Assembly (NCBI GenBank): GCA_965112735.1 | Contig: OZ218951.1 | Location: 3,224,001 to 3,288,000, forward strand | Source: Phaeosaccion multiseriatum | Taxonomy: Eukaryota > Protista > Ochrophyta, other classes | Reading direction: 5' to 3' | Length of the DNA: 64,000 bases | In this document: positions 6,626 through 64,000 of the stretch, one piece after another | Layout of the letters: each line of letters opens with the position of its first letter | How positions within the stretch are numbered: the first letter of the stretch is position 1 | Program-made: the position numbers and the translations under genes | The notes under the pieces: model-generated | The model's database searches: none | What the model was told of the DNA's origin: nothing | Seen by the model: only the letters and a program-made list of their open reading frames with translations

Positions 6626-6660
<35 letters not shown>

Positions 6661-6706
6661 CACAGAGAGAGAGAGGGAGAGGGAGAGGGGGAGAGAGAGA
6701 GGGAGG

Positions 6707-6795
<89 letters not shown>

Positions 6796-10636: not shown

Positions 10637-10676
<40 letters not shown>

Positions 10677-32358: not shown

Positions 32359-35300
32359 ATGTTGGCCCGGAGAGCGTGTAGGCTCGGGGCTTCGCCCGTT
32401 CTCGCAGAGGCCGGACGGGTGTGGAGCAGCAGCAGCGGCGGCAGCAGTAGCAGTAGCAGTAGCAGTAGCAGTAGCAGCAGCAGCAGCTGCAGCTGGAGGG
32501 GGGAGGGCACCCGGAGAAGCATTGCATCTAGCTCTCAGGTGGGTGGGCTGACAGAGGCATGCGCTTTCCATTGGAGTGGAACGTGCTGTGGTATAATGAC
32601 TCACTTACCTGTCCCCCTTTCTGTTTTCCTTTGATTACGTTACTTTGTCTGCACCTTTCTGTCCACTTCAACCCGATTCTCTCTCGCGCCTGCTTGACTG
32701 ACCATGCCTCGGCCTCTGATTCCGTTTACATTTTTAAACAACAAAACCACGCAGCCTCCCATCAAGAAAGTGGGTGTGGTGGGTCTGGGCCTCATGGGCC
32801 ACGGCATTGCCCAGATCACAGCCATGGCTCCTTCTAATTACAAGGTAGGTCGACAAGTGGAGCACCGCACCAGAAGAGGGCAGCACCGAGGGAGCAAGGA
32901 TGCTTCGGATGACACCTTGCTTCTTCTTCTTCTCTGCTCTTTTCGTTGGGTGGGTGGGTGGGTGGGTGGGTGTGTGGAGCACCGCATCAGAAGAGGGCAC
33001 GGCACCGAGGGAGGAGAAGGGGAAGGATGCCTTGTACCATATGTGGTAACTTCTCACACCTTTCTTCTCTTGTGCTCTTCCCATGTGGCTTGTACCCTAT
33101 CATCCCAACCAACGTTCTTCCAATGAGCAAAGGTGGTAGGCGTGGACAGCACGGAGGCGGCGGTGGGCGCGGGGCGAGGCCGCATCGAGGACTCGCTCAC
33201 TAAGGTACGACAAGACAAGACAAGACAAGAGGAATATGCATTTCAGTTAGGCAGTTCAGAGGAGTGGGGAGCGGGAGAGAGACCCTACGCTCCGACTCGT
33301 GCTCTGCCGCCCCATCTCCTCATGCTTGTTCTTCGAGTCGCACAAGGAAGACACAAGGGTTGCGTGCCTTTCCTCCTCTCCCTAAACTCTCTCCTCCCTC
33401 TCTCTCCCTCCGCATCCCGTTTTCTTCCTCCATTCCCCCCCTCCTTCCCTCCTTCCCTCCCCCCTCCCTCCTCACTCCTCCCTCCTCTGTCCTCCCAACC
33501 TCCCTCCCTGGCACCCAAGTTGCTAGCCAAGAAGGTAACGAAGGGCCTGCTGGCGGAGGAGGACGCCGAGCAACAGATCAGCGATACTCTGTCGCGCATG
33601 ACCTTCAGCACCGACAAGGGAGACCTTCACGACTGCGACTTGGTCATCGAGGTGAGCCACGCGCGCACGCACGCACGCACGCCATTCAAGGGGGAAGGAC
33701 AAGCCACACCCCTTCTTCTCTTATCTTGTCACCTTGTAGCAGACAAGGACACGGCCACTCCAAGCCAATGTCGTGCCACTTCTCGCTGCACTGAGCCAGC
33801 AAGCGAGCAGGCGCCCCTTCAAGTGCAGGCACCCACTTAGCCGATACCCACCCCAACCCACACCTCACACGACCCCTTCCACCTCTACCAGGCCATTGTG
33901 GAGGATATGTCAGTGAAGCCCCCCTTCTACGCTGAGCTCGGCTCCATCTGTAAGCCCTCGTGCATCCTAGCGAGCAACACGTCCTCCTTGGCGGTGATGG
34001 AGATGGCTACCCCGTCCCTCCGGCCGGAGAGGGTCGTGGGACTGCACTTCTTCAACCCTGTGCAGGTAACGAGTGGGTGGGTAGGTCGGGGAGGGAGGGG
34101 GATGGGGGGTAGGTATGTTTGAGTGCACCGTCAGGTGGCTGACGGGCGTATTGTGACTTGAGTAGGTAAGGAAGGAAGAGGGGGAAGGAGTGAGCGGTCT
34201 TCGCCGTAAAGAGGTGTTAGTGACAAGTATCCAATGCAGTACAGCTGCTAAGGTGTTATTCGTACGTGCCGTACGTACCATATCCCAACACAAACGCGTC
34301 CCTCCCTATGCCGCTTGTCGCTTGCCGCCCCTTGTCTTTTGCGTGTGTGCCGTGCGTGTGTGGTTGTCACTCTATTTCACATGGACGTGTGGATGGACTG
34401 ACTGCCAATGGACTGACTGACAATGGACTGTTGATGGATGGCAGCTGATGCGCCTGGTGGAGGTGGTGCGAACCGACGTGACGGACCCTGCCGTGTTCGA
34501 CGCCTGCAAGGCTTTCGTCAGTAGCATAGGTGAGGGAGTTGGACTGAGTGGGAGAGAGAGTGGGAGTGAGGGTGTGAGTGACCAAGGGTGAGTGGGCGAG
34601 GCGGGATAAATGTCGTAGTGCCGAACGTAGTGAGTGAGTGAAGGCAGTGAGAAGGGGACACACAGTGGACACCTGCTGGAGTGTGGGTGTAGGGAGGGGG
34701 GAAGGTGGAGGCTGACTTTTTCGCACTGCAAACAGCGTTCCTCCCTCTCCCCTCCTCCCCGACCATAGTGGACCGAATGTCTGACCCCACCCCGCCTCTC
34801 CATCCCTCCTTCCCCACCTTCCTCTCTCTCCATCCTTCCTCCACTCTCTATCCTTCCCCCTCTCCTCCCCTCCCTCTCCCTGCCCTCTACCCCCCCCCTC
34901 CACTCCCTGCCCTCTCTTGTCTCCCGCCCCCGTCCCCCCCCCCCCCCCCCCTCCACCGCCTCATGACGACTGTGGTGATGTGTTGACCGATGTCTTTTGT
35001 CTTTCGTCTTTGTCTTTTCTCTTTTGTCTCTTGTCTTGATTCTCGACTCTTGACAGGAAAGCACGCCGTGTCGTGCAAGGACACACCAGGCTTCATTGTC
35101 AATCGCCTTCTCGTCCCTGCCCTCGCACAGGTAGCGGAGGGAGTTGGTGATGCAGAGGGAGGGAGGGAGGGAAGGAAGGAAGGAGGGAGTGAGGGGGGGA
35201 GGGAGGGGAGGAGGGAAAGAGGGAAGGAGTGAACCAGGGACTGAGTGAGCTGTATCACCAACTGCTGCTGCACGACAAATGTTTACACGTATCACCAACT

Positions 35301-35946
35301 GCTGCACCTCCAGGGCATGCTGATGCTGGACCGGGGAGACGCAACTGTGGAGGACATCGACAAGTCCATGGAGCTCGGGGCGGGTGAGTCAGTGTCAGGA
35401 TGGGTGAGGGAGTGGGTGGAAGGGGACAGGGAGTGGATGAGTCGGTTTCAGGACAGTGACTGAGGGAGGGAGTGGGTGCCAGGCGAGAAGTGAGTGAGTC
35501 AGTGTCAGGATAGTGAGGGAGGGATGTACGGAGGGAGGATGAGTGAGTGAGTGAGTGAGTGAGTCTCCCTCTCTCTCCCCCTCTCACGCTTTCTCTCTGT
35601 ATATATTGTTTCGCCCCTCTCTGTCTCCGTCGATGTACTTATTATTCTCTTCCTCCCGCTCTCCCCCGCCCCTCCCTCTCCCCTCCCCCCCCCCCCTCGC
35701 CGCCCCTTCTCTCCCTCCCTCTCTCTCTTAGGCCACCCCATGGGTCCCTTGACCTTGGCCGACTACGTCGGGCTGGATACATGCCACTCCATCCTGAGCG
35801 GGTGGGTCAGCAACTTCCCCAATGAGCCGGCGTTTGTGGTGCCACAGTGCCTGACAGACAAGGTGAACAAGGGGCAGCTTGGCAGGAAGAGCGGAGTGGG
35901 TTTTTATAGGTGGGATGGAGACAAGCGGAAGGAGGTGGCTTCTTGA
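32359..35946 (+). CDS. HADH: 3-hydroxyacyl-CoA dehydrogenase (short-chain / 3-hydroxybutyryl-CoA type) with mitochondrial-type presequence, 9 exons
   Basis: MLARRACRL presequence; [85 protein letters not shown]. Approximate exons: 32359-32538, 32755-32844, 33133-33204, 33520-33651, 33892-34065, 34445-34529, 35057-35130, 35314-35383, 35732-35946. Confidence 0.95.
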
Positions 35947-36514: not shown

Positions 36515-38934
36515 ACAGTTTTTGGAGTTCACAAATGGCGACTACTTTCCTGGTCCGGGACCTTGCGTCCCGCCAATTCGATTAGTGCAAAATAGATTGT
36601 GCTTTCACGCTTTCAAGAAAGACCTCACCACACTTACAGGACATCACAACACACTCCACCGGCTTGACTACCTTGAGCAATTGGTAAGGATTCACTCTCT
36701 CCATAATCTGCCTCTGTCTTTTCTCCTTTCTATTTTCTTTCCTCTCCTGCCTCTTTCTGCTCATCTCCCCCTCTCCCCCCTTTTCCCTCGTCCAATCCCT
36801 CTTCCCTTCTTTCCACTCCATCCCTCTCTCTCTCCTCTCTTTTTTTCGCCTTTTGCATAGTTTATCCTGCAGTTCACAGCCGGAGGCAGCCAGCAACATC
36901 TTTTCAAGAGCCCCCATCCAGCTCACAGCGCAGCAGAAAGGCAGTAGGAAGGAAGCAGGATCAAGATGGATAGCTTGAACAACCCGCTGGCCCAGCTGGG
37001 GTTCCTGAACAGCTTTAGAACGGGCAATGCAATGATAGACATGGCGATGGCGATGTTGGTTCCTCTTCTCTTCCAGGCGCTGTTCGCCATGGACTGGCGC
37101 AAGTTGGCCAACCTGGGGGGGCTCGCTTGGCTGTTCCAGCCCAAGAAGCAGCGCTTTGAGCGAAGAATTGTATACTCCACCACAACCAACGGCTACGGGG
37201 GGAGTGACGGCGATTTCCAGGAGGAGAGGAACAACATCCTCCAAAAGGCGATTTGCATCTACGTCAGCACAGAGCTCAACCTGAAGATCGACAGCGGCGC
37301 AGTCACCCTCTCTGCCGTGAAGGAGCAAGGAACCATGGACAACAACACCTACAGCGTTGTGTACGGCTCAACGGCGGACCAGCTCAAGTCCTACTCAGTC
37401 AACACTGTCCCCGCCGCCAATGTGTGGGTGGACGTCGCCCCTGGGGTGAAGTTTTGCAAGCAGGTGGAGCAGACCGGTGAGTGAGTGAGTGGGGCGGGTG
37501 GGGTAGGAGGGTGGGCAGGCGGGTGGGCTTGAGGAGAGACTCTTGAGAGAGTCCCCAGTGCTTCTTTCTCTCACCCCTGCTGAACAACACGTTGTCTGTC
37601 TGGCTGTGAACCTGTCCTCTTGCTGTGTGAGCAGATGAGCAGGGCGAGAAGAAGAACACCATCAGGTCGAGGAGCACCGTCCTGCTCTTCCGCTCCGAGG
37701 ACAGGAACGGCGCGGCCTTGATCGACAACTTTGTGTCCACCGCCTTCAAATGGTACCAGGCCGAGATGGAGAAGATCGAGGACAGGTAAGCGCAGACTTC
37801 GCAAAGACTTGTGTGCAAGCTGGACCGAGTGACTTGAGATGGGAAGGCAGGATGATGAAGACAACTGACTTGACGGGCTTTCTGTTTCTCACCAACCCTT
37901 CCCCTTTGGCACTCAATGTTTAATCGCAGCGGTCGGTACCTCTACGCCTTGGACGGCGGGAAGGGAGACGGAGGCAGCTCTTTGGACAGCGACCACACCT
38001 ACAAGCGCTACCTGCTGAGCGAGGGCAAGACCTTCAACTCCATGTTCTTCCCGGAGAAGGAGAGCATCCTCTCTTTGCTGAGCGACTTTACGGAGAAGAA
38101 GGGCAAGTACCGCATCGAGGGCTTCCCGCACAAGCTGGGGCTGCTCCTGCACGGCCCTCCCGGTACGGGAAAGACCTCTCTGATCAAGGCCATGGCTGCG
38201 CACACCAAGCGCAACATCGTCAACATCCCGCTGGCGAGGATCAAGACCAACCAGGAGCTCATGGACATGGTATTTGGGGAGAGCTTCCCCGTCAAGGGCG
38301 AGGAGCTGCCAGGTAGGTTGGAGGGAGGGAGGGAGGGAGGGAGGGAAGGAGGGAGGGAGAAAAGAAGAGAGGGAGGAAGGGCGGCAAACGATGAGGCCAT
38401 ACACATTCCATCCACAAGAAAGTAAGTCGCTGACTTTCCTCCCCCTGCTCTCTGCCCCTTTTGCTTCTTCACACGTACAGTCAAGCTGCACTTCCGCGAC
38501 ACCATCTTTGTGTTGGAGGACGTGGACGCGGCGTCTCCCATCGTTCTCAGTCGAGCGGCGCAGAAGCAGGAGAAGAGGGAGAGGAAGGAGGAGAAGGAGA
38601 AGAAGAAGCAGAGCAAGAAGAAGAAGGAGGAGAGCAAGAAGAGCAAGAAGACAGTCGAGGTGAAGGAGGCCGAGAAGGAGAAGGAGAAGGAGAAGGAGAA
38701 GGAAGCAAGCAGGGTTGAGAAGGGGGAGGAGGTGGAGGGAGAAGGGTCCGCCCTGCCCGATGCGCCCCCGTTGCGACGTACAGAGAGCACGCAGGAGGGA
38801 GAGAAGACACGGGAGGCCTCTCTTTCTCCTTCGCCTTCGCCTCGGGCGACGGAGGGGGCTTGCGTCGTTTCGGACGTCGACAGCGATGATGATGAGAAGG
38901 AGGACAAGGAGGACGAGCTCAGCGACAGCGAGGA

Positions 38935-38968
<34 letters not shown>

Positions 38969-40110
38969 GATGATGACATGGTGATGATTGGCCCCATGGT
39001 GGAGGGGGAGGGGACAGCGGGTCCTAGGGATGACATGCTTGCCATCCTCGCCAGCTGCTTCATGGGCGGGGGCGAGAAGGAGGGCAAGGGCAAGGGAAGC
39101 GGAGGAGGAGGCGGGGGGGGCAGCTTGAGCGGTAGCCAGTTCGCCTCCAAGACCGACAAGCTGGACCTCGCCGGCGTGCTCAACGTGCTCGATGGAGTGG
39201 TGGAGACTCCAGAGAGGATTGTCATCCTCACCAGGTGAGAAGAAGAGAAGAGGGGAAGAGGCAGTCGACCCTTGTTGCTTGTTGACCTTCCTCGGCGCCG
39301 CCAAACTTCTTTGTCCTACTTGGCATCTCACCTCTTCATCTCACTCACTCTCTCTCTCTCTCTCTCTGTCTCACAGTAACCACCCCGAGAAGCTGGACCC
39401 TGCCCTGGTCCGGCCTGGGAGGATCAACCGCAAGATCCACCTCGGCTACATGACGGTGGACAACGTGGCGCAGATGATCAAGCACTACTTCGAGCAGGAC
39501 CTCGACCTCGTGCAGAGGGAGCGCCTCGAGAGGCTCTTCCGGGATGCAGCAGTTGGTGATACGGCGGCAGCAGCAGCAGCAGCAGCACCAGGGACAGGAG
39601 CAGAGGCAGAGGGCGGCCCTCAGTTCACCCCTGCAGTGGTGGAGCAGCTGTGTGCCGAGAACGACACCGTGGAGCAGATGGTGAGCTCCCTCTGCCGCCT
39701 GCACGACATCTCGCTGGCCTTCGCCGAGCGCAGCCGCAAGAAGGGGGGCAAGCCGGGACTGCAGATCGGCACCACCCTGTTCTAACTCTTTACACGCCGT
39801 CGGGCGAGACCCACTCGTGGTAGGCGGCAACTTAACGACCTCTGTACATAATATACTTCAAGTGTAAAAAAAGGCAGTCTATTTTTGGTGTTACACCTCG
39901 CACTTACAACAACTCGTCTCCACAGCCATCCTCTGACGAATCGTTGCCTCGCCTTCCCTGCCAGAAAGAGGCCACGAGAAGAGAAGAGAAGCCCACCTTA
40001 CGCCGCCCACCCTTTCTCTGCTTCATTCCCCACCGTCCTATTCACATTTTGGGTGGATCACCACCACCACCACCATCACCATCGCCTCCCTTGCTCTGCT
40101 GCTTCTGCTG
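36515..40110 (+). repeat. Left arm of ~3.6 kb inverted segmental duplication
   Basis: Reverse-complement match to 48099-51786, running from acagtt..gagttcacaaatggcgactac to ctcccttgctctgctgcttctgctg. Confidence 0.95.
36966..39785 (+). CDS. BCS1-like AAA+ ATPase, copy 1 (5 coding exons, probable 5' UTR intron 36684-36860)
   Basis: N-terminal hydrophobic anchor; LLLHGPPGTGKTS (Walker A), IFVLEDVDA (Walker B), [35 protein letters not shown] (SRH). Approximate exons: 36966-37476, 37634-37785, 37931-38312, 38481-39234, 39377-39785. Confidence 0.92.
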
Positions 40111-43100
40111 CTCCTCCTGCTCCTGCTGCTCCTTCTGCATCTGCATCTGCTGCTCCTTCTTCCAGAGCGCCTCGCGCACCTTCCTGCTCTCCTCTGCGAT
40201 CCTGCTGGCCTCTGCCTTGGCCGCCTCTTGCGGGGAGGGTTGGGGGGGCGGGGGGGGTACCACGGGTATGTCGGCAAGGGCTTTGATGGCAGGCTGGCGA
40301 AGGGTGATACTCTGCATCACAGACAGAATATTGTTGGGCAACCAGTAGAAGAAGATGCCCTGGGTGTGTGCGTAGAGGGAGAGAGAGAGAGAGAGTGCGA
40401 GGACGAGGAGTGAGTGGTGCGAGTGCGTGGGTGAGTGTGAGTGTGAGATTGGTAGGAGACAAGCATGTGGGTAGGAGACAACTATTCCCTGCCTTGCAGT
40501 TACCCAGCCCCCCATTCCACTGCCTTTCCCTAATAACCCCATCCACTGCCATCACCACAACGGCAGCGCAGTGCAGGTGCGCGAGTCATGCGTTTGCTCT
40601 TCATGAACAACCAACCAACCTAACAACCAACCACCCAACCAACCAACCAACAAACCAACCCACCAACCAACCAACCAACCAACCAAGCAGCCAACAGTCC
40701 AATCCACCAACCAACCAACCAACCCGCCCACCCACCCACCAAGCAAGCAAGCAAGCAAGCAAGCAAGAAGCACCCAATCAATCAACCGAGCGAACGAGCA
40801 ACTCACCTGCGGCATGGTGATAGCGATGGGGACGGAAACGACGCCCATGATGCGAATCATGTTCTGCATCATCTTGGCCTGTTGGGGGTTGGGTGACGCC
40901 GAAGTGTCCATGGCAAACTCTCCCAGAGCCTGCGACAAAGGGGAGGGGTGGGTGGGTGAGGAGGAAGGAAGAGGAGTAGGTTGCCCCACCAGCGATGCCT
41001 CTCGCTCGCTCTCATACGCACTCTCCCTCTCTCTCTTCTTCGCTCTTTCTCTCACTCCCTCCCTCCCTCTACTCTGTCTCCCTCCTTTCTCTCTCTCTCT
41101 CTCTCTCTCTCACCAGCAGACTGAAGCAGGTGGCAGCCGGCAAGATGTACGTGGAGTCAATTGCAGACAGGTCAGGGAACATGGCAGGACCGCCAGTGGC
41201 CCAGTCTGGGAAGTACGTTCCCATCTGAGGAAAAAGGACGAGAAGAAGAAGAAGAAGAAGAAGAAGAAGAAGAAGAAGAAGAAGAAGAAGAAGAAAAAGA
41301 AGAAGAACAACAACAACACAAATAACGACAAAAAGGGAGAGAGTGACTGAATCCGTTAATAGTGAGAGAGAGAGGAGGAGGTTTGTGGTCATGTCCTTGC
41401 TTCCTGCCCTGCCCGCGTGTGCTTTAGAAGAAAGCCCCTCGCCCCCACCACACTACAATCACCCCACACCCACACTCACCCCACCCCAGCCCGGCAAACT
41501 ACTCCCCTCCCGCCACTCTTCCTTCTCTCCTCCCTTCCCCTCTCTCCAAGCGCACCTGCCTCAGTCCGAAGAACATGCCCGTGAAGACTGGAATCTGCAC
41601 GAAGGGAAAGAGGAGCATCTTGAAGGGGTGCGGTATGCCCCTGTCCTTGAAGAAATTTAAGGACTCCGCCTTGCCCTGGGCCATCTCCTCAGGGTCTCGA
41701 GTTTGTTGGATCTGCAGGCATAATACACGAATGATCAGTACGGGAATAAGTAAGTAAGTAAGCAAGTAAGGAAGTAAGAAAGTAAGAAGGAAAGTAAGCA
41801 AGAATAAAATGAAAAGAAAAAAAAAGTCCGTCGTACAGCCGTTCCTTCAGGCAGAGCCCAAAGCCCAAAGTAAGCAAGCAAGGCAAGGCACCATACCCCT
41901 GCCCCCCCGACCCCATCTGCTCAACATCCATCCCGTGCTCCCCCTTTCGTCCGTGTCTTTCGGCTTCGGCTTGCACCCCAACCGCAACCCCACCCCTCCG
42001 CCTGCTCCTGCCAGTGCATGCGCTTGCTTGCTTGCTATCCCTCCCCACCTGCTGCATCTTCTTCTGCAACGCCTCAAGCTCGGGCTTGACGATGGCGAGC
42101 TGCGCGGCTCCCCTCATCTGCGCGATGGTCATGGGAACCAAAGCGATCCGGAGCATGACGGTGAGGGCGATGACTGTCTGCCAATAGGGCAGGCCGCTTG
42201 CCACGTGTAAGGCCTCGACCGCCCTCATGGCAAGTTCACTTGGCCACATCCCCACTGAGGGGTGAGAGGAGAGGGGGAAGAGGGGAGGGGAAGGGGGGTT
42301 GGGGGGGAGTGGGGGTTCGTTCAGGGACTCTAGTTCTTGGTCACACACAATCGGAGAAGAGAAGGTGTGGGATGACGCAACGCATTCAGACAAACGCCTC
42401 CTCCTCCTCCTCCTCCTCCTCCTCCTCCTCCTCCTCCTCCTCCTCCTCCTCCTCCTCCTCCTCCTCCTCCTGCTCCTGGTCCTCATATCTCTCTGGAAAG
42501 AAGGACATGCAATGCATTATACAATCTCGCAGCGGCGGCGTTTGCTTTCAGCACCAGGGTCTTTCATAGGGTACCTCAAGGGCAAAGGATGGGGGGGGCA
42601 CAGCACATCAACTGGGATGCCTGGCGCCTTCCGGAAGGACGCCGTGGAAGGACTCTCCATCTTTCTGTTGCCGATTGGGTATATCAGGCCAAGAGAATCT
42701 TTTGCACTTGCCGACCGTGACACCCTCCTCACTTACGTTGGTCGGGAGATACACTCCCCAGCGTGCTCACTGCTGCATCCACGTTACTTGTAATGCCTGC
42801 CGCTGCTTCGGCTCCACTCCCAGCGACGCTCGTGCTTATTCCGTCGACACTGCTGCTCCCAACGTCAATACTGTCAACGCTGCTACTAACACTGGTGGCG
42901 CCAACCTCTGCTCTACCATCGTCTGCCCCCCAAGCCGGATTATCGGTCGAGAAGGGGTCTTGCATTATCTGCCCTTCAGAAGAGGATCCTGATCCCGCCG
43001 CTTCTTCTCCAGTTCCGTTTGCACCAGCCGCTCCAGACCCCGCTCCCTCCTTGCCCTCCTTGCCCCCCCCGCGACCGAACCAACTCGCGTGTCGCACGCC

Positions 43101-43364
43101 CCCCAGCTGCCGGCGATGCCGCTCGTAGTCGTTCTGCCGATACCCATGAAGGCCAGGGTAGGGACTCAAGATTCTTCTGCTGTTGCCGCTATTATTGCAG
43201 CTATTGCTGCTGCTGTTGTCGTTCTTGGCGCCACAGTCATGCTGGACAAGCAGAGATGAGTAGTTGGACGTGCTGACTGTGGCAGCAGCACCAGACTTGG
43301 CAGATCCCCTCCAACAGCATTTCCGCAGCACCGATGAGGCGTAGATGCCCTGCTTTCGAAGCAT
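40042..43364 (-). CDS. OXA1: Oxa1/YidC/Alb3 family membrane insertase, mitochondrial-type, 6 exons
   Basis: EALHVASGLPYWQTVIALTVMLRIALVP, KPEL, PFVQIPVFTGMFFGLR, FPDLSAIDSTYILP, MPQGIFFYWLPNNILSVMQ. Presequence ends ..GGVRHASWF. Approximate exons: 43364-42735, 42254-42049, 41711-41556, 41225-41114, 40929-40807, 40359-40042. Confidence 0.9.
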
Positions 43365-43532
43365 GGTCTTCTGCGAGAAGGAAGAGGCGAGGACGATATC
43401 CGAGGACAGGACAAGATCGTGCTGTCAGGTGCCATCGATGGAGGCGTACGGGAAATCTTTTGGAGTGATAATCGATGATAATTGAAGGCCAAGCAAGTGC
43501 TGCCTGCGCAAAGGAGGAGGAAGGACGGAGCT

Positions 43533-46500
43533 ATGCTCCATCAAAGAGCGAGACTATCGTTTGTACGGTGCCACCGCCACGTCGCTGCACTGCGAAAGCA
43601 GGAGCAGCTGAGGAAATATCGGTGCGCCTTCTCAGCCTCAGCCGGGCAGCTGCAGCAGCAGCAGCAGGGTGCAAGAGCGGCATCCGTAACATCAGGAGGT
43701 GTGCATCCAGGGTTGACGAGTAGACGGCGCAGGCTTTGTACTACTACGCCCACTCGCGGCTATGCAGAGGGGAAGTCCACGGCTGCGATGGGTGGAGATG
43801 CCACAGCCGCCCATGCGGCTGATTCCCTTGAGGGATTAGGCAGCACCAACGACGAGCAGCAGCGAGAGAAGCAGATGATGGTGATGAGCGAGCTTGCGGT
43901 ATTCGGGCGGCGGAAGCTCTGGAGGGAGGTTCATCGCGTGCTGCAGCGCGCCAGACAGCAAGGAGTCCTTGTGGATGGCTACGTGTATGGAGCCGCCTTC
44001 GCTGCCCTCGCCAAGAGCGGGCGCTGGAGAGAGTCACTGGCGCTCCTGGCGGAGATGCCCGTGTACAAGGTGCCGGTCAACCTGGTGCACTACAAGACCG
44101 TCATGAGGGCTTGCGCTAAGGTACGAGCCTCTCAGAGGGCAGGCACATCACGCGACGATTACTCGCCTCCCAAGGTACCTCTTGCCCGCATGCACACATA
44201 TACCGCTCTTTTCGCTCCAGCTTCCCCTCCCTCAACCCCACCCCCACCCCCACCCCCATACTCATGTTCGTCTCTAACCACCCTACAACAGGGGCGCAAG
44301 CTCGACGTCATGGCGCAAGTCTTCGGCGACTTACACAACAAGGGCCTAACCGCGGACGTGAGCACGTACAACATCATGATTGCAGCGTACGGCCGCAGCG
44401 AGAGGCCCGAGGAGGCGGTGGCACTGCTCAGAGCCATGAAGGAGGCAGGGGTGCCGCCAGATGCACTGAGCTACCACACCGCCATTGACGCATGCGGCAA
44501 TGCGAGGCAGCTCGACCTCATGGCGAGCCTGTTCGACGAGTTTAGGGCGGAGGTATCGTCAACATCATCATCAGTAGCAGCAGCAACAGGAGGAGGAGGA
44601 GGAGGAGGAGGAGGAGAGGAAGGGAGAGCGGACACTGCGGTGGAGGGGAGCGGCAGCATCGGCACCGGCGGCATGACGCCAGTGCTGCAGTGCTACAGCT
44701 CCATGATCTGCTCCCTCGCCAAGATGGGCCAATTCGACCAAGCCAAGGAGCTGCTCCAAGAGATGGAGGAGCAGCGCAGAGGAGCGGACGCGGCGGACAG
44801 GGACAGCAGCTCTGCTTCCTCTTCTTCCTCTGCTTCCATCCAACCCACTCTGGTGTGCTACGCCTCGCTCCTCAGTGCTTGCGCCAAGGCCGGCAATAGC
44901 AGAGAAGCGTTTCGCATCCTCTCGGATATGCGAAGCGCTGGCTTGCAGCCCAGTGTACAGTGCTACACGAGTTTCATGAAGGCGAGTGCGGCGGAGGAGG
45001 GGGGCGGGGGCGGCGGCTTGGAGAGGGGCCTCGAGGCACTGGAGGAAGGGGGGTGGTGGGACCGGGAGGCCTACTGCGCGGCCATTGTGCAGTGTCTAAA
45101 GCAGCACGAAGGAAGAGGGCCGAGCACAACGGGTAGCACAGGAGGAGGAGGAAGAGGAGGAGGCGGGCGAGGGCGAGACGGCAGGGGGTGGCTGAGGAAG
45201 GCCATGTCGTTGCTGAGTGACATGAAGGGCAAAGGACTATCGCCCGACCTGTCATGCTACGAGGCTCTCGTTAAGGCGCACAGCAGCGATAGCGTAAAGA
45301 GCAGCAGCAGTAGCAGGGGCAGCAGTTGGTCATCCAGCAGCCGCGGCGAAGGTGCAGGGGAAGGGGGGGGGGTCTTTGTTGGTGGTGGGGAGGAGGAGCG
45401 GCAAGAAAGGGCTCACGTAGTGGCCCGGGGGCTGCTCGGAGAAATGCATGCCATGGCCGTGGCAGACATGAAAGAAAAGGACGAAGAGAGAAGAGGGAGG
45501 ATGGGGGTGGACAAGGGGAAGGGTGGGGGAGACTGGAGTGATGACGACGACGGCAGTAGTAGAGCAGGCAACGCGAAGCTGTGGGGTGTCATGAGTGGGA
45601 GCTTTCAGGCCCTTCTAAAGGCACATGCGGAAACGGGTAGGCATGACCAGGCGCTGGCCCTTCTCGCTATGATGAAGCAGACCCGGCTTGGGGGGGGGGC
45701 ACAGCAGCAGCAGGCAGAGGGTGGAGAGGAGGGCGGCGGGGGAGTGGCGAGGGGCAAGAAGAGGATAAGCCAAGAAGAGGAACCCATTGGATCACACCTG
45801 ATGGACCTTGTTATCGCCTCTTTTGTGGGGGGCAGCAGCAGCACCGGCGGCAGCAGCAGCAGCACCAGCGGCAGGCACGGCGCCGATAGCGCAGCAGAAG
45901 CGGAGAGGCGGCTGGCGACTGTGAGTGGACTGATGGAGGAGATGCAGGCCAACAAGCAACTCCCCGCCAAGCAGAGCTTTGCTGCGGCCATTCGACTCTG
46001 CGCTCTCTGTGGAGACGGCGGGGGTGTGCTGGAGAGCGAAGGAGGAGGAGTGAGAGGAGCGACATCATCAAGCTTCGAGGCACAAGGAGGAGGAGTGAGA
46101 GGAGCGACATCATCAAGCTTCGAGGCACAAGATGGGAGGGCTGTGGCAGGGGTAGGGGCTGCGGCTGATGAGAGCCTACCCCATGACCCAGATTCGTTAG
46201 ACTCCGGGAGCCGCGCGTACGCCTATTTGCAGGAGATGAACAAGAAGGGTTACCGCCCTGTCGTGCAGACGTACTGTGACGTCATCACTGCTTGTGCTCG
46301 GGCCGGGCAGGAGGAGATGACTTTCGATGCCATGGTTATGCTCAGACAAGGTGAGTGAGTGAGGAGGAGGCGTGTAGCAAAGCACCACTTACCCTCCCTC
46401 CCTCCTTAGTATCCTTAATGGACGCTGCTGCTCCTTCCTTCTCGGTCCCGATCCTCCTCCTCTCCTCCTCCTCCTCCTCCTCCTCCTCCTCCTCCTCCTC

Positions 46501-47108
46501 CTCCTCCTCCTCCTCCTCCTCCTCCTCCTTCTCCTCCTCCTCCTCCTTCTCTCCTCCTCCTCCTCCTCCTGCTCCTCCCTCCTCCTCCCTCCTCCTCCTC
46601 CTCCTCCTCCTGCTCCTCCTGCTCCTCCTCCTCCTCCTGCTCCTCCTCCTCCTCCTCCTTCTCTCCTCCTCCTCCTCCTCCTCCTCCTCCTCCTCCTCCT
46701 CCTCCTCCTCCTCCTCCTCCTCCTCCTCCTCCTTCTCTCCTCCTCCTCCTCCTCCTCCTCGCCCCACCCTCGCTCATCATCGAATCACACACCCACCCAC
46801 CCACCCATCCACCCACCACAACTCTCAACAGGCCGTGCAGAAGCGACCATGGACTCGTGGACGTATTCCGCGGTGCTGCAGATGCTCATTGCCAAACACG
46901 ACTACGGCAAGGCCCACGAGGTGCTCAAGGTCATGGACAAGGACAGAGTGAGGCTTGACGCAGGCTGTCTCGACGCGGCCATCGCAGTCACTTGCTCGAG
47001 GGGAGACGCGGCTACCGCGGAGAGGCTGTACCGCGACTACATGTTACTAGCAACGGCAGGACCAGCACAAGTGCAGCAGTTGGGGTTACCGGAGGAGCAA
47101 CAGCAACA

Positions 47109-47150
<42 letters not shown>

Positions 47151-48096
47151 CAGGCCCCGCGCAGAGACGTATCACTTGTTCATCTCCACTCTCATCGAGG
47201 CGGGCAAGACGAAGCGCGCCGTAGCTCTGTTGGACGACATGCGGCCCTACCCCGACCGCAGAGCCTTGGAGTTGGCCGTGGGTGCGTGTGCGGTGGACAG
47301 GAGCATGCTTGACAAGTGCCTGTCGCTACTGGACGAGATGGTGATAAAGCGCGGGTTCGAGCCCAGTCAGGCAAGTATTGTTGGAGTCATTCTCGCCGCA
47401 GGAAAGAGAAAGGCGGGGGGACGCGGAATGGCATCAGAAATGGCAACAGCTGGCCCAGATAGCAACAGTGTTATGGGCGCAGATGGCAGTGGTTGGAGCG
47501 GCCTTGACGTCTTTCGGCGAGCGGAATCGGAGTGGAAAGTCGCCCCTGGCCCCGAGGTATACGACGCGGTGTTGCAGACTCTTGACACCGGTGGCAGCAG
47601 AAGGAACAGCGACGATGCCGAAGCTTCGAAGGAGGTGTATGCAGAGGCCGTGGAGCGCGGCGTGCTCAAGCATTGGGCGAGCATGGACACCGTCACCACA
47701 CCCACCTCCCCCACCTTCTCCTCTTCCACGGGTGGTGACGCTTCTGCGGCGCTTGAAGCCGGCGAGGAGAGCGAGAGCAATGGGGCTGCAGCAGGGGAAG
47801 AACAGGAGGAGGAGGAAGAAAAAGAAGAAGACGTGGTCCTGGACTTCCGTCGCTACTCCCTGGCGGCGAGTAAGGCGGCTTTGCGGCACGTCAGTGGCGA
47901 ATTGACATGTTCAGGGTTGCCAACTGTAGAGGTCATCACAGGCAACAGCAAGCCGAGGCTGAGGCTCTTCCAGCCTGCGCTCGTCAAGTGGATTGAGCAG
48001 GAGTCAGGGTCCGGTGTAACCGTCTCCATCGACTCCGCCAACCCTGGCCGCCTTGTGCTCACGCTGCCGGCAGATAGACAAATGCTCTTCCACTGA
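43533..48096 (+). CDS. Pentatricopeptide repeat protein with C-terminal degenerate Smr/MutS2 domain (PPR-SMR)
   Basis: PPR motifs such as VSTYNIMIAAYGRSERPEEAVALLRAMKEAGVPPDALSYHTAIDACG and CYASLLSACAKAG..AFRILSDMRSAGLQPS. C-terminal VLDFRRYSLAASKAAL..VEVITG..NPGRLVL. Introns at ~44121-44291 (in-frame) and 46351-46831. Confidence 0.88.
46040..46130 (+). repeat. Exact 45 bp tandem duplication within the PPR CDS (GGGVRGATSSSFEAQ x2)
   Basis: aggaggaggagtgagaggagcgacatcatcaagcttcgaggcaca occurs twice in tandem. Confidence 0.9.
46455..46760. repeat. (CCT)n microsatellite in PPR intron
   Basis: Seen directly. Confidence 0.9.
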
Positions 48097-48098
48097 TT

Positions 48099-51000
48099 TC
48101 AACAAAAGCAGCACAGCAAGGGAGGTGATGGTGATGGTGGTGATGGTGGTGGTGGTGGTGGTGGTGGTGGTGGTGGTGATCCACCAAAAATGTGAATAGG
48201 ACGGTGGGGAATGAAGCAGAGAAAGGGCGGGCGGCGTAAGGTGGGCTTCTCTTCTTTTCTTTTGCCTTCTTTCTGACAGGGAAGGCGGGTCTCGTTGCCT
48301 CGCGTCAGAGGCGCGGGGTATAACGCCAAAATATAAGACCAGCTTGCTTCTCTTTCAAACATGTGTGTCCAAGGACACACTTAAAAGTATATTATGAACA
48401 GAGGTCGTTAAGTTAAGTTGCCGCCTACCACGAGTGGGTCTCGCCCGACGGCGTGTAAAGTCCAGGGTTAAAAGCGACACTAAAGATTTAGAACAGGGTG
48501 GTGCCGATCTGCAGTCCCGGCTTGCCCCCCTTCTTGCGGCTGCGCTCGGCGAAGGCCAGCGAGATGTCGTGCAGGCGGCAGAGGGAGCTCACCATCTGCT
48601 CCACAGTGTCGTTCTCGGCACACAGCTGCTCCACCACTGCAGGGGTGAATTGAGGGCCGCCCTCTGCCTCTGCCCCTGTCCCTGCTGCTGCTGCTGTATC
48701 ACCAACTGCTGCATCCCGGAAGAGCCCCTCGAGGCGCTCCCTCTGCACGAGGTCGAGGTCCTGCTCGAAGTAGTGCTTGATCATCTGCGCCACGTTGTCC
48801 ACCGTCATGTAGCCGAGGTGGATCTTGCGGTTGATCCTCCCAGGCCGGACCAGGGCAGGGTCCAGCTTCTCGGGGTGGTTACTGTGAGACAGAGAGAGAG
48901 AGAGAGAGGGAGTGAGTGAGATGAAGAGGTGAGATGCCAAGTAGTACAAAGAAGTTTGGCGGCGCCGAGGAAGGTCAACAAGCAACAAGGGTCGACTGCC
49001 ACTCCCCGCTCTTCTCCTCGTCTCACCTGGTGAGGATGACAATCCTCTCTGGAGTCTCCACCACTCCATCGAGCACGTTGAGCAGGCCGGCGAGGTCCAG
49101 CTTGTCGGTCTTGGAGGCGAACTGGCTACCGCTCAAGCTGCCCCCCCCGCCTCCTCCTCCGCTTCCCTTGCCCTTGCCCTTCTTGCCCCCGTCCTTCTCG
49201 CCCCCGCCCATGAAGCAGCTGGCGAGGATGGCAAGCATGTCATCCCCAGTCCCCGTCCCGGTCCCCTCCCCCTCCATCATGGGGCCGATCATCACCATGT
49301 CATCATCCTCATCCTCGTCGTCGTAGTCGTCGTCGTCATCCTCGCTGTCGCTGGGCTCGTCGTCCTTGTCCTCCTTCTCATCATCATCGCTGTCGACGTC
49401 CGAAACGACGCAAGCCCCCTCCGCCGCCCGAGGCGAAGGCGAAGGAGAAAGAGAGGCCTCCCGTGTCTTCTCTCCCTCCTGCGTGCTCTCTGTGCGTCGC
49501 AACGGGGGCGCATCGGGCAGGGCAGACCCTTCTCCCTCCACCTCCTTCCCCTTGTCAACCCTGCTTGCTTCCTCCACTTCCTTCTCCTTCTCCTTCTCGG
49601 CCTCCTTCACCTCGACTGTCTTCTTGCTCTTCTTGCTCTCCTCCTTCTTCTTCTTGCTCTGCTTCTTCTTGTCCTTCTCCTCCTTCCTCTCCCTCTTCTC
49701 CTGCTTCTGCGCCGCTCGACTGAGAACGATGGGAGACGCCGCGTCCACGTCCTCCAAAACAAAGATGGTGTCGCGGAAGTGCAGCTTGACTGTACGTGTG
49801 AAGAAGCAAGAGGGGGAGAGAGCAGGAGGAGGAAAGTCAGCGACTTACTTTCTTGTGGATGCAATGTGTATGGCCTCATCGTTTGCCGCCCGGCCTCATC
49901 GTTTGCCGCCCTTCCTCCCTCCCTCCCTCCCTCCCTCCTTCCAACCTACCTGGCAGCTCCTCGCCCTTGACGGGGAAGCTCTCCCCAAAGACCATGTCCA
50001 TGAGCTCCTGGTTGGTCTTGATCCTCGCCAGCGGGATGTTGACGATGTTGCGCTTGGTGTGCGCAGCCATGGCCTTGATCAGAGAGGTCTTTCCCGTGCC
50101 GGGAGGGCCGTGCAGGAGCAGCCCCAGCTTGTGCGGGAAGCCCTCGATGCGGTACTTGCCCTTCTTCTCCGTAAAGTCGCTCAGCAAAGAGAGGATGCTC
50201 TCCTTCTCCGGGAAGAACATGGAGTTGAAGGTCTTGCCCTCGCTCAGCAGGTAGCGCTTGTAGGTGTGGTCGCTGTCCGAAGAGTTGTCCCCGTCTCCCT
50301 TCCCGCCGTCCACGGTGTAGAGGTACCGACCGCTGCGATTAAACATTGAGTGCCAAAGGGGAAGGGTTGGTGGAAACAAAAAGCCCGTCAAGTCAGTCAA
50401 TCTGTCTTCATTTCATCATCCTGCCTTCCCATCTCAAGTCACTCGGTCCAGCTTGCACACAAGTCTTTGCGAAGTCTGTGCTTACCTGTCCTCGATCTTC
50501 TCCATCTCGGCCTGGTACCATTTGAAGGCGGTGGACACAAAGTTGTCGATCAAGGCCGCCCCGTTCCTGTCCTCGGAACGGAAGAGTAGGACGGTGCTCC
50601 TCGACCTGATGGTGTTCTTGTTCTCGCCCTGCTCATCTGCTCACACAGCAAGAGGACAGGTTCACAGCCAGACAGACAACGTGTTGTTGTTCAGCAGGGG
50701 TGGCTGAGAGAAACAAGTCCCGGGGACTCTCTCAAGACTCTCTCCTCAAGCCCGCTCGCCCGCAACCCCACACACCCCACTCCCCCACTCCCTCACTCGC
50801 TCACTCACTCACCGGTCTTCTCCACCTGCTTGCAAAACTCCACCCCAGGGGCGACGTCCACCCATACATCGGCGGCGGGGACCGTGTTGACTGAGTAGGA
50901 CTTGAGCTGGTCCGCCGTTGAGCCGTACACAACGCAGTAGGTGTTGTTGTCCATGGCTCCTTGCTCCTTCACGGCAGAGAGGGTGACTGCGCCGCTGTCG

Positions 51001-51786
51001 ATCTTCAGGTTGAGCTCTGTGCTGATGTAGATGCAAATCGCCTTTTGGAGGATGTTGTTCCTCTCCTCCTGGAAATCGCCGTCGCTCCCCCCGTAGCCGT
51101 TGGTTGTGGAGTACACAATTCTTCGCTCAAAGAGCTGCTTCTTGGGCTCGAACAGCCAAGCGAGCCACCCCAGGTTGGCCAACTTGCGCCAGTCCATGGC
51201 GAACAGCGCCTGGAAGAGAAGAGGAACCAACATCGCCATCGCCATATCTATCATTGCATTGCCCGTTCTAAAGCTGTTCAGGAACCCCAGCTGGGCCAGC
51301 GGGTTGTTCAAGCTATCCATCTTGATCCTGCTTTTTTCCCCTTTCTATTGCCTTTCTGCTGCTGTGAGCTGGATGGGCTAGAGCTATACGAGCACGGTTC
51401 TATTTCCTGCTGGCTGGGTGCCTCCGGCTGTGAACTGCTCGATGAACGATGGAAAGGACGAAAAAAAGAGAGGAGAGAGAGAGAGGAAGGGAGTGGAAAG
51501 AAGGGAAGAGGGATTGGCCGAGGAAAAGGGGGGAGAGGCGAGATGAGCAGAAACAAAGAGGGGGAAGAGTAAAGCAAACAGAAAGGAGGGAGGAGAGAGG
51601 GAGATTATGGAGAGAGTGAAGCCTTACCAATTGCTCAAGGCAGTCAAGCCGGTGGAGTGTGTTGTGGTGTCTTGTAAGTGTCGTGAGGTCTTGTGCTGAA
51701 AGAGTGAAAGCTCTCGGCGCCATTGGCGAATTGGCGGGACGATCCCGGACCGGGCAAGTAGTCGCCATTTGTGAACTCAAACTGTC
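48099..51786 (-). repeat. Right arm of the inverted segmental duplication
   Basis: Reverse complement of 36515-40110. It begins 3 nt after the PPR stop and ends 5 nt before the SDR ATG. Confidence 0.95.
48488..51320 (-). CDS. BCS1-like AAA+ ATPase, copy 2 (intact paralog)
   Basis: Same exon structure and motifs as copy 1. The coding indels I could see are all in frame (e.g. STTNG vs STTTNG, shorter poly-Ala). Same C-terminus GLQIGTTLF. Confidence 0.92.
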
Positions 51787-51790
51787 CAAC

Positions 51791-53888
51791 ATGCCCACAA
51801 CAGCTGCTCAAATGATTCTTTCACGTGGGTTTTTGGAGCGTCTCCTTCTGCTCGTTGCTGTGGTCCTGCCTGCCACAGCTTTCTCTTTTTTGGTACCAAG
51901 CTCAGTCAACATCGCGGTACGAAATTCCATCAGCATGGCGGATACGAGTGCGCCGCCGGGAGAGGGCCTCCGTGTCCTCGTTCTTGGAGCCACCGGAGGA
52001 TTGGGGGGGGTGATCACCAAGGGCTTCGTGGAAAGGTCAGCACAAGGCTCCCCCCCTCTCTGGGGCGGGAGTGTTTCTCTGAGTAGGGAGGGGGCTAGAG
52101 AGAGGCAGACGGAGAGAGCGAGAGAAGAAAAGAGAGGGGGGCGAGAGAGGAACGAGGGCGGGGGGGAGGCAGAGAGAGAGAGACAGAGAGAGAGAGAGAG
52201 GGTGAGAGAGATACCCTGGACGAGCTTGCCCTCTCATGGGCACTCCCTCACTCTTGTGCAGTTCTCTTTGATTGTGCCAAACTCACTCACACCCATGACC
52301 TGTTTCCCTTCCCCCTTGGTACCATACAGAGGATATAAGACCGTGGCCACGTGCCGCTCGAGCGACAAAGACTTGGCCGAGATGGGCTGCGAGCTCATCA
52401 TTGAGGACGTCGACGTGACCAAAGCAGACAAGGTTGCGGCCATGGTCAAGGTGAGCTTCATGTCCTTAGTGAGGATTTCTTGCTGTCATGTGCTGTCATT
52501 GGGATACTTTTAGGTTTTTGAGTAAGCCTTCTTGCTGAATTGAATATCGCACACATACGAAGTGGCGTTTTGTTCTTTTGCGTCGCAGCAGCAGTGAGTA
52601 GCAGAAATAAGTGAAGTGGCACCCGTCTCCGACCAACACCGTCTTTCTTTTGCCCTTTCTTTTGCCCCTTGTGGTGTTGGTTGCCCTTTCGCTGCCATCT
52701 GCGGTCATGTGTGAGTAGAAGCTGCAGGAGAAGGACATGAAGCTGGACAGGATTCTCGTAGTGGCGGGCTTGCTCATCGCAGAGGAGTTCGGGGAGCTCA
52801 AGTATGACGCTAACATGAAAATGTGAGAGAGGGAGGGGAGGGTGGGAGGGAGGGAGGAAGGCGCGCTGCAATTTGTTCTTGAACTTGTATCTGCTCCTCG
52901 TCCATGGGGCGACCGACGCCCCCAATCAATCAATAGTAGTGGGTGGGTGGATGGATGGGCGAGACCCATTCTCCTGCACTCACTCTCGCTCCTTCTCTTC
53001 CCCTCATTCTGCAGGTACGACGTGTGTGCGTTGGGCCCTCTGCGAGTGGTGGAGGCGTTGGTGAACGCAAAAATGTTCACAGATGGCGCTAAAATAGGCC
53101 TTATCACGTCCGAAGGCGGCAGTATTGGGCTACGGACGGATGTGAGTGTTTCGCATAGACAATCCGACACGTTCTGAGAGGGTGTTTCTGTAACCGTCTG
53201 CATGGCCCTTCCTATTTCCGTTGCTCTATCTGTGTGCCTCCCTCACTCTCTCGTCTCTTCTCTATCTGTCGCTCTCTCCCCGTATCTGTCTCTCTCGCAC
53301 TCTCTACCTTTGGATGTCTGTCTCTCTTCCCCCTACCCTCCATCTCTCCCTCTCTCCCCTCCCCTACCTCCCCCCCCTCGCAGAAAGAGGGTGGCGACAA
53401 CTACGGTCACCACATGTCCAAAGCCGCGGAGAACATGATGGGCAAGATCCTGGCCATTGACCTCAAACCCAAGGGGCTTCCCGTGGTCATGATCCACCCA
53501 GGTACATGTAGAGGCAGTGTTTGGGGAAGATGAAGTCGAGGGACGCCGAGTCGGAAGGGAGTCGCACACTAACCCTGCACACTCTTTCACTCCTTCTTCC
53601 CTCTCTTCCTTTCTTCCCCTTCTCCCCCCCTTCCTCCCTCCCTCCCTCCTCTCCCTGGCAGGCTTTATGAAGACGGAAATGACGGAAATATACAAAGACA
53701 AGTGGGAGGAGTTTGGCGCCAAGACCCCGGCCGAGAGCGTGCCCGGTATCATCGACACGCTTGAGCGATGTACCCTCGACAGCACCGGCCAGTTTATTGC
53801 CCCGAGAGGGAGTCAAGGATTGGGCATGGGAGTCAACGCGCTGGAGAAGCCTGAAGATTACGGGCCGTTCAGTCAGCTTCCCTGGTGA
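51791..53888 (+). CDS. CsgA/C-factor-like short-chain dehydrogenase with atypical HxxxK active site and probable plastid presequence, 6 exons
   Basis: VLVLGATGGLG, DVDVT, VVAG, LITSEGGSI, NYGHHMSKAAENM, IHPGFMKTEMT, C-terminal LPW. Signal LLLLVAVVLPATA-FSF. Approximate exons: 51791 (or 51812)-52035, 52330-52450, 52719-52822, 53015-53140, 53384-53501, 53662-53888. Confidence 0.88.
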
Positions 53889-58540: not shown

Positions 58541-59351
58541 GATGGTGCCACTCAGAAGGACAACGCAAGGAGTATCATGGTGGAGGAAGTAGGAGCAGCT
58601 TGCCCAGCTACGACTCACCAAATACCATCCGGACCGACCGGAATGCAGCACGCTTTGTCGGCAGGGGTGGATACCTGAGCGTGGCCCCATACACAGCGCA
58701 GGAGCAGAGAGTGGAAGCAGGAGGGGCAGGTTCACAGAGGAAGAGACAGCCCAAAAAGGTGTGTGCATTGTACTGACTGCAAGCTCATTACGAAGTGGCC
58801 CTACGTCCCCATCCTCAGCACGCCAGAGTCACAGTCATCAAAAGAAAGAAGACACGGCTTTGGCTCCACTACTGTTGTTCCACTAGCTACGATACTGGCT
58901 GGGCGGCCCAGCGACTCGCCACCCTCTTCCTCCACTCGTGCACGCACCTTCAGCTTTTTACAGGCATGGGCCGTCTCGCATTTAGCGGTGGAGTCCCCGT
59001 ACATTCTGAGAGGGGCACAGGCCGGTGGGGAAAGCAGCACGCCTCAGCAAAGGCGGCGTGGCAGGCCAGAGAAGAGGATGTGGCGAACGACGGACTTACC
59101 AAACAGGAATTCTTTCTAGTGCAAGCAGCACTCGACGTGCCCTCGAATATCGCTTCCTGCGGATGGGGTGATGCAAACGATACAGAGAAAGGACAGGCAT
59201 GAGTTACAAGCTTAGCTTAAGCTTCCCAGAGAGCGACTAACGAAGGGGCTCGTGCAATCACCCTTGTCCGTGTAGGACTCACATAGCATGCGTACTCTAC
59301 GCTGCACGTCACGGGGCAGTTCTGCGCACAGCCAGGGGTTCACGTCGCATG
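58541..59351 (-). pseudogene. Decayed direct-repeat copy of the Cys-rich four-exon block at 63159-64000
   Basis: Colinear with 63159-64000. It has a 4 nt insertion (aacccctGGCTgtgcg) and an 8 nt net deletion at the start of the exon reading GAELYGDS in the other copy; both shift the frame. Confidence 0.7.
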
Positions 59352-62417: not shown

Positions 62418-64000
62418 AAAAAGAAGAAGAAGGAGAAGCAGAAGCAGAAGAAGAAGCAGAAGAAGAAGAAGAAGAAGAAGAAGAAGAAGAAGAAGAAGAA
62501 GAAGAAGAAGAAGAAGAAGAAGAAGGAGAAGCAGAAGAAGAAGCAGAAGAAGAAGAAGAAGAAGAAGAAGAAGAAGAAGAAGAAGAAGAAGAAGAAGAAG
62601 GAGAAGGAGAAGCAGAAGAAGAAGCAGAAGAAGAAGAAGAAGAAGAAGAAGAAGAAGAAGAAGAAGAAGAAGAAGAAGAAGAAGAAGAAGAAGAAGAAGA
62701 AGAAGAAGGAGGCGGAGGTAGAAGCGAGGAATATACGTGTTGCTGTCGACACTCTCCCTGGCTAGCTACGTTCTACGTCCACCTGCTCCCTCTCGATCTT
62801 CATCCTCCCTTGCACGGCAGACCAGACATAGCTACGAGCCGCCCAGACAAGAAGAAGGCACACAACCGTGGACGGGCAACACACCCCTTCCTCCAGTCAC
62901 GCAAAAGGGCCACGCATCGCTTCGCCTCACAGCCCAGGGTAGGACACACAGCACACTAGTCCACAAAGCAAATCAATCACTCTCTTCCTTGCCTTACCAG
63001 TGACAGGGCATATCTCGACGTAAAGAGGGCTTCGTTTCAGTCAAGGGGGGGGGGGGGGGGCAGTCGAGGCCATCATTCGCAGCGAACCACGCACAGCAAT
63101 GCGGACGCGGGGAATGCCTCTTCAGTCGTCAGCTTACAGGGATGAGCAAGGGGGGTATGATGGTGCCACTCAGAAGGACAACGCAAGGAGTAAATGATGG
63201 AGGAAGCAGGAGCAGCTTGCCCAGCTACGACTCACCAAACGCCATCCGGACCGACCGGAAGGCAGCACGCTTTGCCGGCGCGGGTAATTACCTGAGCGTG
63301 GCCCCATACACAGCGCAGGAGCAGAGAGTGGAAGCAGGAGGGGCAGGTTCACAGAGGAAGAGACAGTCCAAGGGGGGTGCCAAGAAAAGGGGTAGGTGTG
63401 TGCATTGTACTGACTGCAAGCTCATTACGAAGTGGTCCTACGTCCCCATCCTCAGCACGCCAGAGTCACAGTCATCAAAAGAAAGAAGACACGGCTTTGG
63501 CTCCACTACTGTTGTTCCACTAGCTACGATACTGGCTGGGCGGCCCAGCGACTCGCCACCCTCTTCCTCCACTCGTGCACGCACCTTCAGCCATACACAG
63601 GCATAGGCCGCTTCGCATTTGGCGATGGAGTCCCCGTACAGCTCAGCACCCTGAGAGGGGCACAGGCCGGTGGGGAAAGCAGCACGCCTCAGCAAAGGCG
63701 GCGGGGCAGGCCAGAGAAGAGGGTGTGGCGAGCGACGGACTTACCAAACAGGAAGTGGCTTCAGTGCAAGCAGCACTCGACGTGCCCTCGAATTTCACTT
63801 CCTGCGGATGGGGCGATGCAAACGATATAGAGAGAGGACAGGCATGAGTTACATGCTTAGCAAGGTTAGTCAGGCTTCCCAGAGAGCGACTAACGAAGGG
63901 GCTCGTGCAATCACCCTTGTCCTTGTAGGACTCACTTCGCATCCGTGCTCTACGCTGCACGTCACGGGGCAGTTCTGCGCACAGGGGTTCACGTCGCATG
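61794..64000 (-). CDS. Partial Cys-rich extracellular protein with an EGF-like domain; 5' part beyond the window
   Basis: Small exons >64000-63936 (CDVNPCAQNCPVTCSVEHGCE), 63801-63745 (EVKFEGTSSAACTEATSCL), 63650-63585 (GAELYGDSIAKCEAAYACVWLK) and 63291-63236. EGF exon 61928-61794 (HCTDSPNNCDVNAQCEQLTEAPVASYTCTCNDGFRWDGITCV) is phase 1-1. Confidence 0.7.
62283..62710. repeat. Long (AAG)n microsatellite
   Basis: Seen directly. Confidence 0.95.
63159..64000. repeat. Second copy of the ~0.8 kb direct repeat (pairs with 58541-59351)
   Basis: Both copies begin gatggtgccactcagaaggacaacgcaaggagta and run to ggggttcacgtcgcatg; this copy is truncated by the window end. Confidence 0.92.

Follow-up and report, generated by a model that had tools for sequence, protein, structure and literature searches.

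Inverted duplication of a BCS1-like AAA ATPase gene around the OXA1 and PPR genes of Phaeosaccion multiseriatum

Genes and arms at the locus

Here, we describe a pair of inverted arms in the stramenopile alga Phaeosaccion multiseriatum, each with a complete AAA ATPase gene, that enclose an OXA1 and a PPR gene. All coordinates refer to the window, i.e., the analysed stretch of 64,000 nucleotides (assembly GCA_965112735.1, contig OZ218951.1, positions 3,224,001 to 3,288,000 of the forward strand), which sits on a 6-Mb contig of a 67-Mb assembly with 22 contigs. The locus comprises the following features.

32704-35946, plus strand: 3-hydroxyacyl-CoA dehydrogenase gene (HADH), from the open reading frame list, with Pfam 3HCDH_N and 3HCDH
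36521-40100, strand not applicable: left arm, comprising 445 nt of copied upstream sequence, ATPase-L and a 3' region common to both arms, in which the final 20-23 OXA1 codons lie
36966-39785, plus strand: ATPase-L, BCS1-like AAA ATPase of 735 aa, five-exon model with GT-AG at all introns
40042-42486, minus strand: gene for an OXA1/YidC-type insertase, interrupted by introns, with Pfam 60KD_IMP matches to the ORFs at 41689-42486 and 40045-40542
43533-48096, plus strand: PPR gene with one intron at about 46350-46831, from Pfam PPR families, translation and splice sites
48100-51787, strand not applicable: right arm, comprising the OXA1 tail relic and 3' region, ATPase-R and, between it and the SDR-like gene, a head-to-head spacer of 470 nt
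48488-51320, minus strand: ATPase-R, 732 aa, mapped via the arm alignment, frame intact
51791-52513, plus strand: first exons of a gene for an SDR-like NAD(P)-binding protein, from translation and a weak Pfam KR match

A self-comparison of the window for breakpoints and identity, as proposed in a preliminary description of this DNA, was run by self-BLAST and a repeat search and revealed one large inverted pair. Positions 36521-39792 match 51781-48481 at 92.4% identity over 3350 columns, with 126 mismatches and 59 gap openings, and a second block (39950-40081 versus 48287-48156) is 93% identical. Global alignment, read at its ends, places the limits of homology at 36521-40100 and 48100-51787; the preliminary description, which had reported reverse-complement arms at 36515-40110 and 48099-51786 with a complete AAA ATPase gene in each, was right to within a few bases, and self-BLAST, alignment and gene models bear out its claim. 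The arm DNA is non-repetitive and, like the ATPase exons, present in two copies only across the 67-Mb genome; the left outer flank is single copy. Between the arms lie about 8 kb of unique sequence with the OXA1 and PPR genes, both of mitochondrial type. This is the form of a breakpoint duplication: otherwise unique, non-repetitive DNA that occurs twice, inverted, and brackets a segment. Between the convergent stop codons, a patch of about 90 nt (39866-39949 versus 48292-48384) is about 60% different in surroundings that differ by 7-10%; comparison of the patch between the arms ruled out a micro-inversion as its source.

The HADH stop codon (35944-35946) is followed by 574 nt of single-copy sequence up to the left arm. 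The last OXA1 exon is an ORF at 40042-40542 with its stop at 40042, and alignment and translation place 20-23 of its codons inside the left arm, in agreement with the earlier claim that the last ~23 OXA1 codons belong to the duplicated block. The PPR gene, which ends with a TGA at 48094-48096, had been described as a PPR-SMR gene. Its PPR repeats are evident (PPR_2, E 1e-47), and the SMR half of that label was not confirmed: SMR (PF01713) had no Pfam match at its C-terminus at E up to 1 and no match in a PDB sequence search. A single-sequence fold was unusable (pLDDT 52), and the resemblance to SMR is one seen by eye only. The best relative in a word-based protein search with the 958-aa PPR ORF was a brown algal protein of 28% identity, in keeping with a stramenopile host; the search returned no self match. 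The SDR-like gene, with its first ATG at 51791, encodes a hydrophobic N-terminal presequence and a GATGG Rossmann motif.

The ATPase family and constraint on its two copies

The model of ATPase-L (exons 36966-37476, 37635-37785, 37930-38312, 38481-39234 and 39377-39785) was built by three-frame reading and splice sites and transferred through the arm alignment to ATPase-R (exons 51320-50813, 50636-50486, 50332-49950, 49789-49027 and 48881-48488). Both copies have GT-AG at all eight splice sites, and no frameshift or stop interrupts either five-exon model. The gene model is validated by four intronless metagenomic homologues (L001-L004; 35-42% identical), because these align colinearly across the exon joins. 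The metagenome scan used ATPase exon 3 as query, and its homologues were too short or too distant to give gene order; database and family searches likewise used single exons.

The encoded protein has a strongly hydrophobic stretch at residues 22-40, an N-terminal anchor, followed by the Walker A (296) and Walker B (357) motifs, a sensor region (597) and RPGR (612). Exon 3 carries Walker A and matches Pfam AAA (2e-8); BCS1 is among its PDB matches, and for the full-length homologue L004 it ranks first in the PDB, as the best relative with a solved structure (E 4e-24). By these matches the protein has a single AAA module closest to BCS1. The BCS1_N domain (PF08740), however, had no Pfam match on exons 1-2 at E up to 1, and in a whole-genome scan it was found only on contig 7, where the canonical BCS1 gene lies. 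Language-model features placed the N-terminal 170 aa beside BCS1_N clusters (0.92-0.93), which is a lead only. The designation BCS1-like, used from the outset, is thus justified with respect to the AAA module and the general layout, though not in the sense of membership of BCS1 proper. As in BCS1 and the plant AAA_assoc-type ATPases, there is an N-terminal hydrophobic anchor and one AAA module; unlike them, the protein lacks a detectable BCS1_N and has an acidic/basic low-complexity insert of about 205 residues, present in both copies between Walker B and sensor 1.

The insert (window positions 38510-39130 and 49130-49760) begins with Lys/Glu runs, which give way to runs of Asp and finally of Gly. 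L001-L003 are of similar length (ORFs of 766-806 aa), and L004, intronless and 452 aa long, is without the insert. L004 comes from a dense metagenome contig of 63% GC (ERZ1049444 NODE-784, 4648-10789), on which it adjoins an mRNA capping enzyme and a DUF5767 protein. In a language-model search, the cluster nearest to the ATPase N-terminal domain was 92% viral (Nucleocytoviricota). The ATPase family may include giant-virus members; alternatively, the L004 contig could come from a compact green alga. A scan of viral contigs with the L004 homologue gave no matches. Upstream of the gene, a donor-like motif (CAATTG/GTAAGG, ATPase sense) is conserved at 36678-36689 and 51622-51633, and an acceptor lies just 5' of the ATG, which suggests a 5' UTR exon and intron. 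If this intron is real, ATPase transcription would start at about the outer edge of each arm, in the right arm beside the start codon of the SDR-like gene.

Divergence between the arms is lowest in the exons (2.5%), and amounts to 7.1% in the introns, 7.6% in the alignable 3' block and about 15% in the 5' flank. The preliminary description had proposed testing both dS and gene conversion between the arms. The comparison of the two ATPases gave dS 0.054 and dN 0.019, i.e., dN/dS 0.35, and 32 of the 57 changes are non-synonymous, against an expected share of 78%. Indels are multiples of three in six of six cases in exons, a pattern partly due to trinucleotide repeats in the coding insert, as compared with one of eight in introns and two of 17 in flanks (three of 25 outside exons). 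Because dN/dS is well below neutrality and all exon indels keep the frame, we conclude from these sequence comparisons that purifying selection has kept both ATPase reading frames. Polarised with the distant homologues, nine residues are derived in the left copy and seven in the right, and 15 are ambiguous. These numbers show no asymmetric evolution of a moved copy and, together with dN/dS and the indels, lead us to regard both copies as apparently retained.

A single age fits dS (0.054) as well as divergence in the introns (0.071) and in the 3' block (0.076). At 0.15, the 5' flank shows twice the divergence of the introns. This excess could stem from later homogenisation of the gene body; it could equally stem from fast change in the CT/GA-rich spacer. 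The test for gene conversion yielded no clear tract. The longest perfect tract between the arms measures 180 bp, slightly more than permutation predicts (2% of stratified shuffles reach this length); tracts of this length speak weakly for conversion and not at all for ongoing inversion. The earlier suggestion that the arms mediate recurrent flip-flop of the 8-kb interior found no support at 92.4% identity and with perfect tracts of at most 180 bp, and the assembly contains no second haplotig. It is highly improbable that the arms still recombine and that the OXA1-PPR cassette occurs in both orientations in the population. Were it so, each flip would swap the 3' region and the neighbour of each gene, the locus would be an invertible segment of a eukaryotic nuclear genome, and breakpoint-duplicating inversions would there be a recurrent source of new genes.

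Junctions and the origin of the arm pair

The left inner junction falls inside the last OXA1 exon, and both the reading frame and the Gln/Glu/Lys-rich composition run on across it. Because of this continuity, the OXA1 tail is most simply read as native in the left arm and as a relic in the right arm. At the right inner junction (48094-48195, plus strand), the PPR TGA is followed by TTT and then by the OXA1 tail relic. The relic shares the PPR frame, its GGT repeat is expanded, and it runs to what is left of the OXA1 stop. If the PPR TGA were read through, the protein would gain about 32 residues rich in Gly and Asp, up to the former OXA1 stop (48094-48195). The right arm fills the gap from 3 nt past the PPR stop to 4-9 nt short of the first ATG of the SDR-like gene at 51791, as the claim that it reaches up to the SDR start codon had implied, and it contains the complete 470-nt head-to-head spacer. 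At the left outer junction (36515-36526), the flank ends in GTACAG and the flank of the right arm, on the reverse strand, reads GGACAG, a 4-nt microhomology (ACAG). The preliminary description held that each arm keeps its ancestral context at one end only. For the left inner junction, the OXA1 frame and composition favour this view; that the right outer junction is native would follow from the plausibility of the spacer only.

We propose that an inversion duplicating its own breakpoint is the most economical reading of the arm pair, and we give it about an even chance. The ancestral order, the inversion itself and the geometry of the breaks are all inferred from one assembly. The ancestral order would have been HADH(+), PPR(-), OXA1(+), ATPase(-), SDR(+), with a single BCS1-like ATPase gene arranged tail-to-tail relative to OXA1 on one side and head-to-head relative to the SDR-like gene on the other. 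The PPR-OXA1-ATPase block would then have been flipped by an inversion of about 11.6 kb. Cuts on the ATPase side would have been staggered by 3.6 kb between the two strands of the DNA (or between two sister chromatids), and the cut on the opposite side would have been blunt, 3 nt past the PPR stop codon. Through fill-in and end joining, the 3.6-kb stretch bounded by the staggered cuts would end up on either side of the block, in opposite orientation, so that the right copy would have stayed beside SDR and the left copy would have moved with OXA1 and been joined to the 3' flank of HADH via the 4-nt microhomology. The event would be dated by dS (0.054) and intron divergence (0.071), and both copies would since have been kept as working genes. 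The mirror image of this event, a staggered break with the left arm staying put, is rejected, as it would run the OXA1 coding sequence into the SDR start codon.

The spacers in this ancestral map would comprise two convergent ones of 577 and 256 nt and a divergent one of 470 nt, and the OXA1 gene and the SDR promoter would both be native. We favour the inversion because it is the only one of four simple histories that combines normal spacers with an untouched OXA1 gene. The ancestral order and staggered-break inversion put forward in the preliminary description are upheld to the extent that the anatomy is real and only this map has that combination; the flush ends of the right arm (3 nt and 4-9 nt from two coding sequences) are not predicted by the model. 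They amount to two positional coincidences, of roughly 1-2% each if breaks were random. Survivorship of a new copy that kept its promoter softens the objection in part but does not remove it: to work, the left copy must have the entire upstream region but can do without the SDR start, and HADH depends on its 3' end. The 4-nt microhomology fits rival histories equally well.

Chief among these is copy-and-paste with the left arm as the original, which stays alive because the right arm is flush with two coding sequences, and which we consider unlikely. Here, the ancestral order would have been HADH, ATPase(+), OXA1(-), PPR(+), SDR(+), with no inversion at all, and a break in a very short PPR-SDR spacer would have been repaired by reverse copying of 3.6 kb from 8 kb away, i.e., by templated insertion or template switching. 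The flush fit of the right arm (3 nt and 4-9 nt) would then be explained, since insertion elsewhere would have destroyed a gene; OXA1 is native in this history as well, and the ACAG at the outer junction suits a template switch. However, the spacer between PPR stop and SDR start would have to be about 12 nt long, as compared with 250-1000 nt for other spacers at the locus, and the SDR-like gene would have to work from foreign upstream sequence. A transcript of both genes is unlikely to be translated, given a long upstream ORF of about 1400 codons.

A two-step path, in which the ATPase block was first copied in inverted orientation into the HADH-PPR interval and homologous recombination between the arms then flipped the interior, is improbable; the inversion and this variant taken jointly have a somewhat better than even chance. 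The path yields exactly the present structure, the arms were long enough to recombine when young, and such follow-up recombination is reported in Helicobacter by Furuta et al., as cited in 10.1101/2025.09.20.677491. It nevertheless invokes two events where one is enough, and its intermediate left no independent trace. Distinctly improbable is copy-and-paste with the right arm as the original, whereby the insertion struck the 3' end of OXA1, so that its last codons and its 3' UTR were replaced. The corresponding map does have normal spacers (PPR/ATPase convergent at 391 nt, ATPase/SDR divergent at 470 nt), yet foreign DNA would have to extend the OXA1 frame by 23 codons together with its Gln-rich run, and the segment copied would need ends that lie flush against two coding sequences. 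An assembly artefact, i.e., mis-joined haplotypes or a fold-back, is hardly credible, as the preliminary description had already argued from substitutions and indels: the arms differ by 126 and 59 of these, respectively, enclose 8 kb of unique genes, show coding constraint in both copies and lie on a 6-Mb contig of a 22-contig assembly that holds no alternative haplotig for flank or exons.

Known inversions and further repeats

That inversions by staggered breaks leave inverted duplications at their breakpoints, which the preliminary description took as established, is documented in Drosophila, where 17 of 29 inversions carry such duplications and one breakpoint alone is duplicated in 12 (Ranz et al. 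2007, PMC1885836). Duplications between melanogaster and yakuba measure at most 1.9 kb and most copies are dead (Ranz et al. 2007, PMC1885836). The 2025 preprint 10.1101/2025.09.20.677491 cites duplicated blocks of 7-13 kb with whole genes and names D. buzzatii 2m and D. mojavensis 2h as larger, gene-bearing cases; it further mentions cases of inversion-associated DNA duplication (DDAI) in Helicobacter and a plant case, buckwheat, for which the same mechanism is proposed.

The locus described here resembles the Drosophila inversions in that unique, non-transposon sequence flanks a block on both sides as two oppositely oriented copies. As in the 12 Drosophila cases, only one breakpoint is duplicated, and here a whole gene has been copied. 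In contrast, the block is tiny (8 kb of unique sequence plus 3.6 kb), the duplication is larger than any between melanogaster and yakuba (at most 1.9 kb), both copies are intact and constrained where most Drosophila copies have decayed, and the host is a stramenopile alga with an ancestral order inferred from one assembly. With Helicobacter DDAI the locus shares a new gene copy at the far end of the inverted segment, in reverse orientation; many genomes were compared there, as against one assembly here.

If the inversion is the true history, the locus would be a clear example of a chromosome rearrangement giving rise to a new gene as a side effect, and the PPR gene would have obtained its terminator region, that of OXA1, from the duplicated block. 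This is a known way of making new genes, and with a mechanism that has been textbook material since 2007 it opens no new question. The survival of both copies under selection is the unusual feature, in a lineage, the stramenopile algae, whose rearrangement mechanisms have hardly been studied.

A DNA-level comparison detected a second inverted duplication on the same contig (contig 2, 1256387-1257828 versus 1292703-1293928, contig coordinates), with arms of about 1.4 kb that are 84-90% identical and bracket about 35 kb. The present pair and at least one more on the same contig give a hint that this mode of inversion is common in the genome.

The window contains further repeats. Short-period tandem-repeat arrays at 46425-46786, in the PPR intron, and at 21927-22151 are related to each other (about 87% alike), and arrays like these are scattered through the window. 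A direct repeat (58541-59351 and 63159-64000) is 90% identical over 848 nt and runs off the end of the window.
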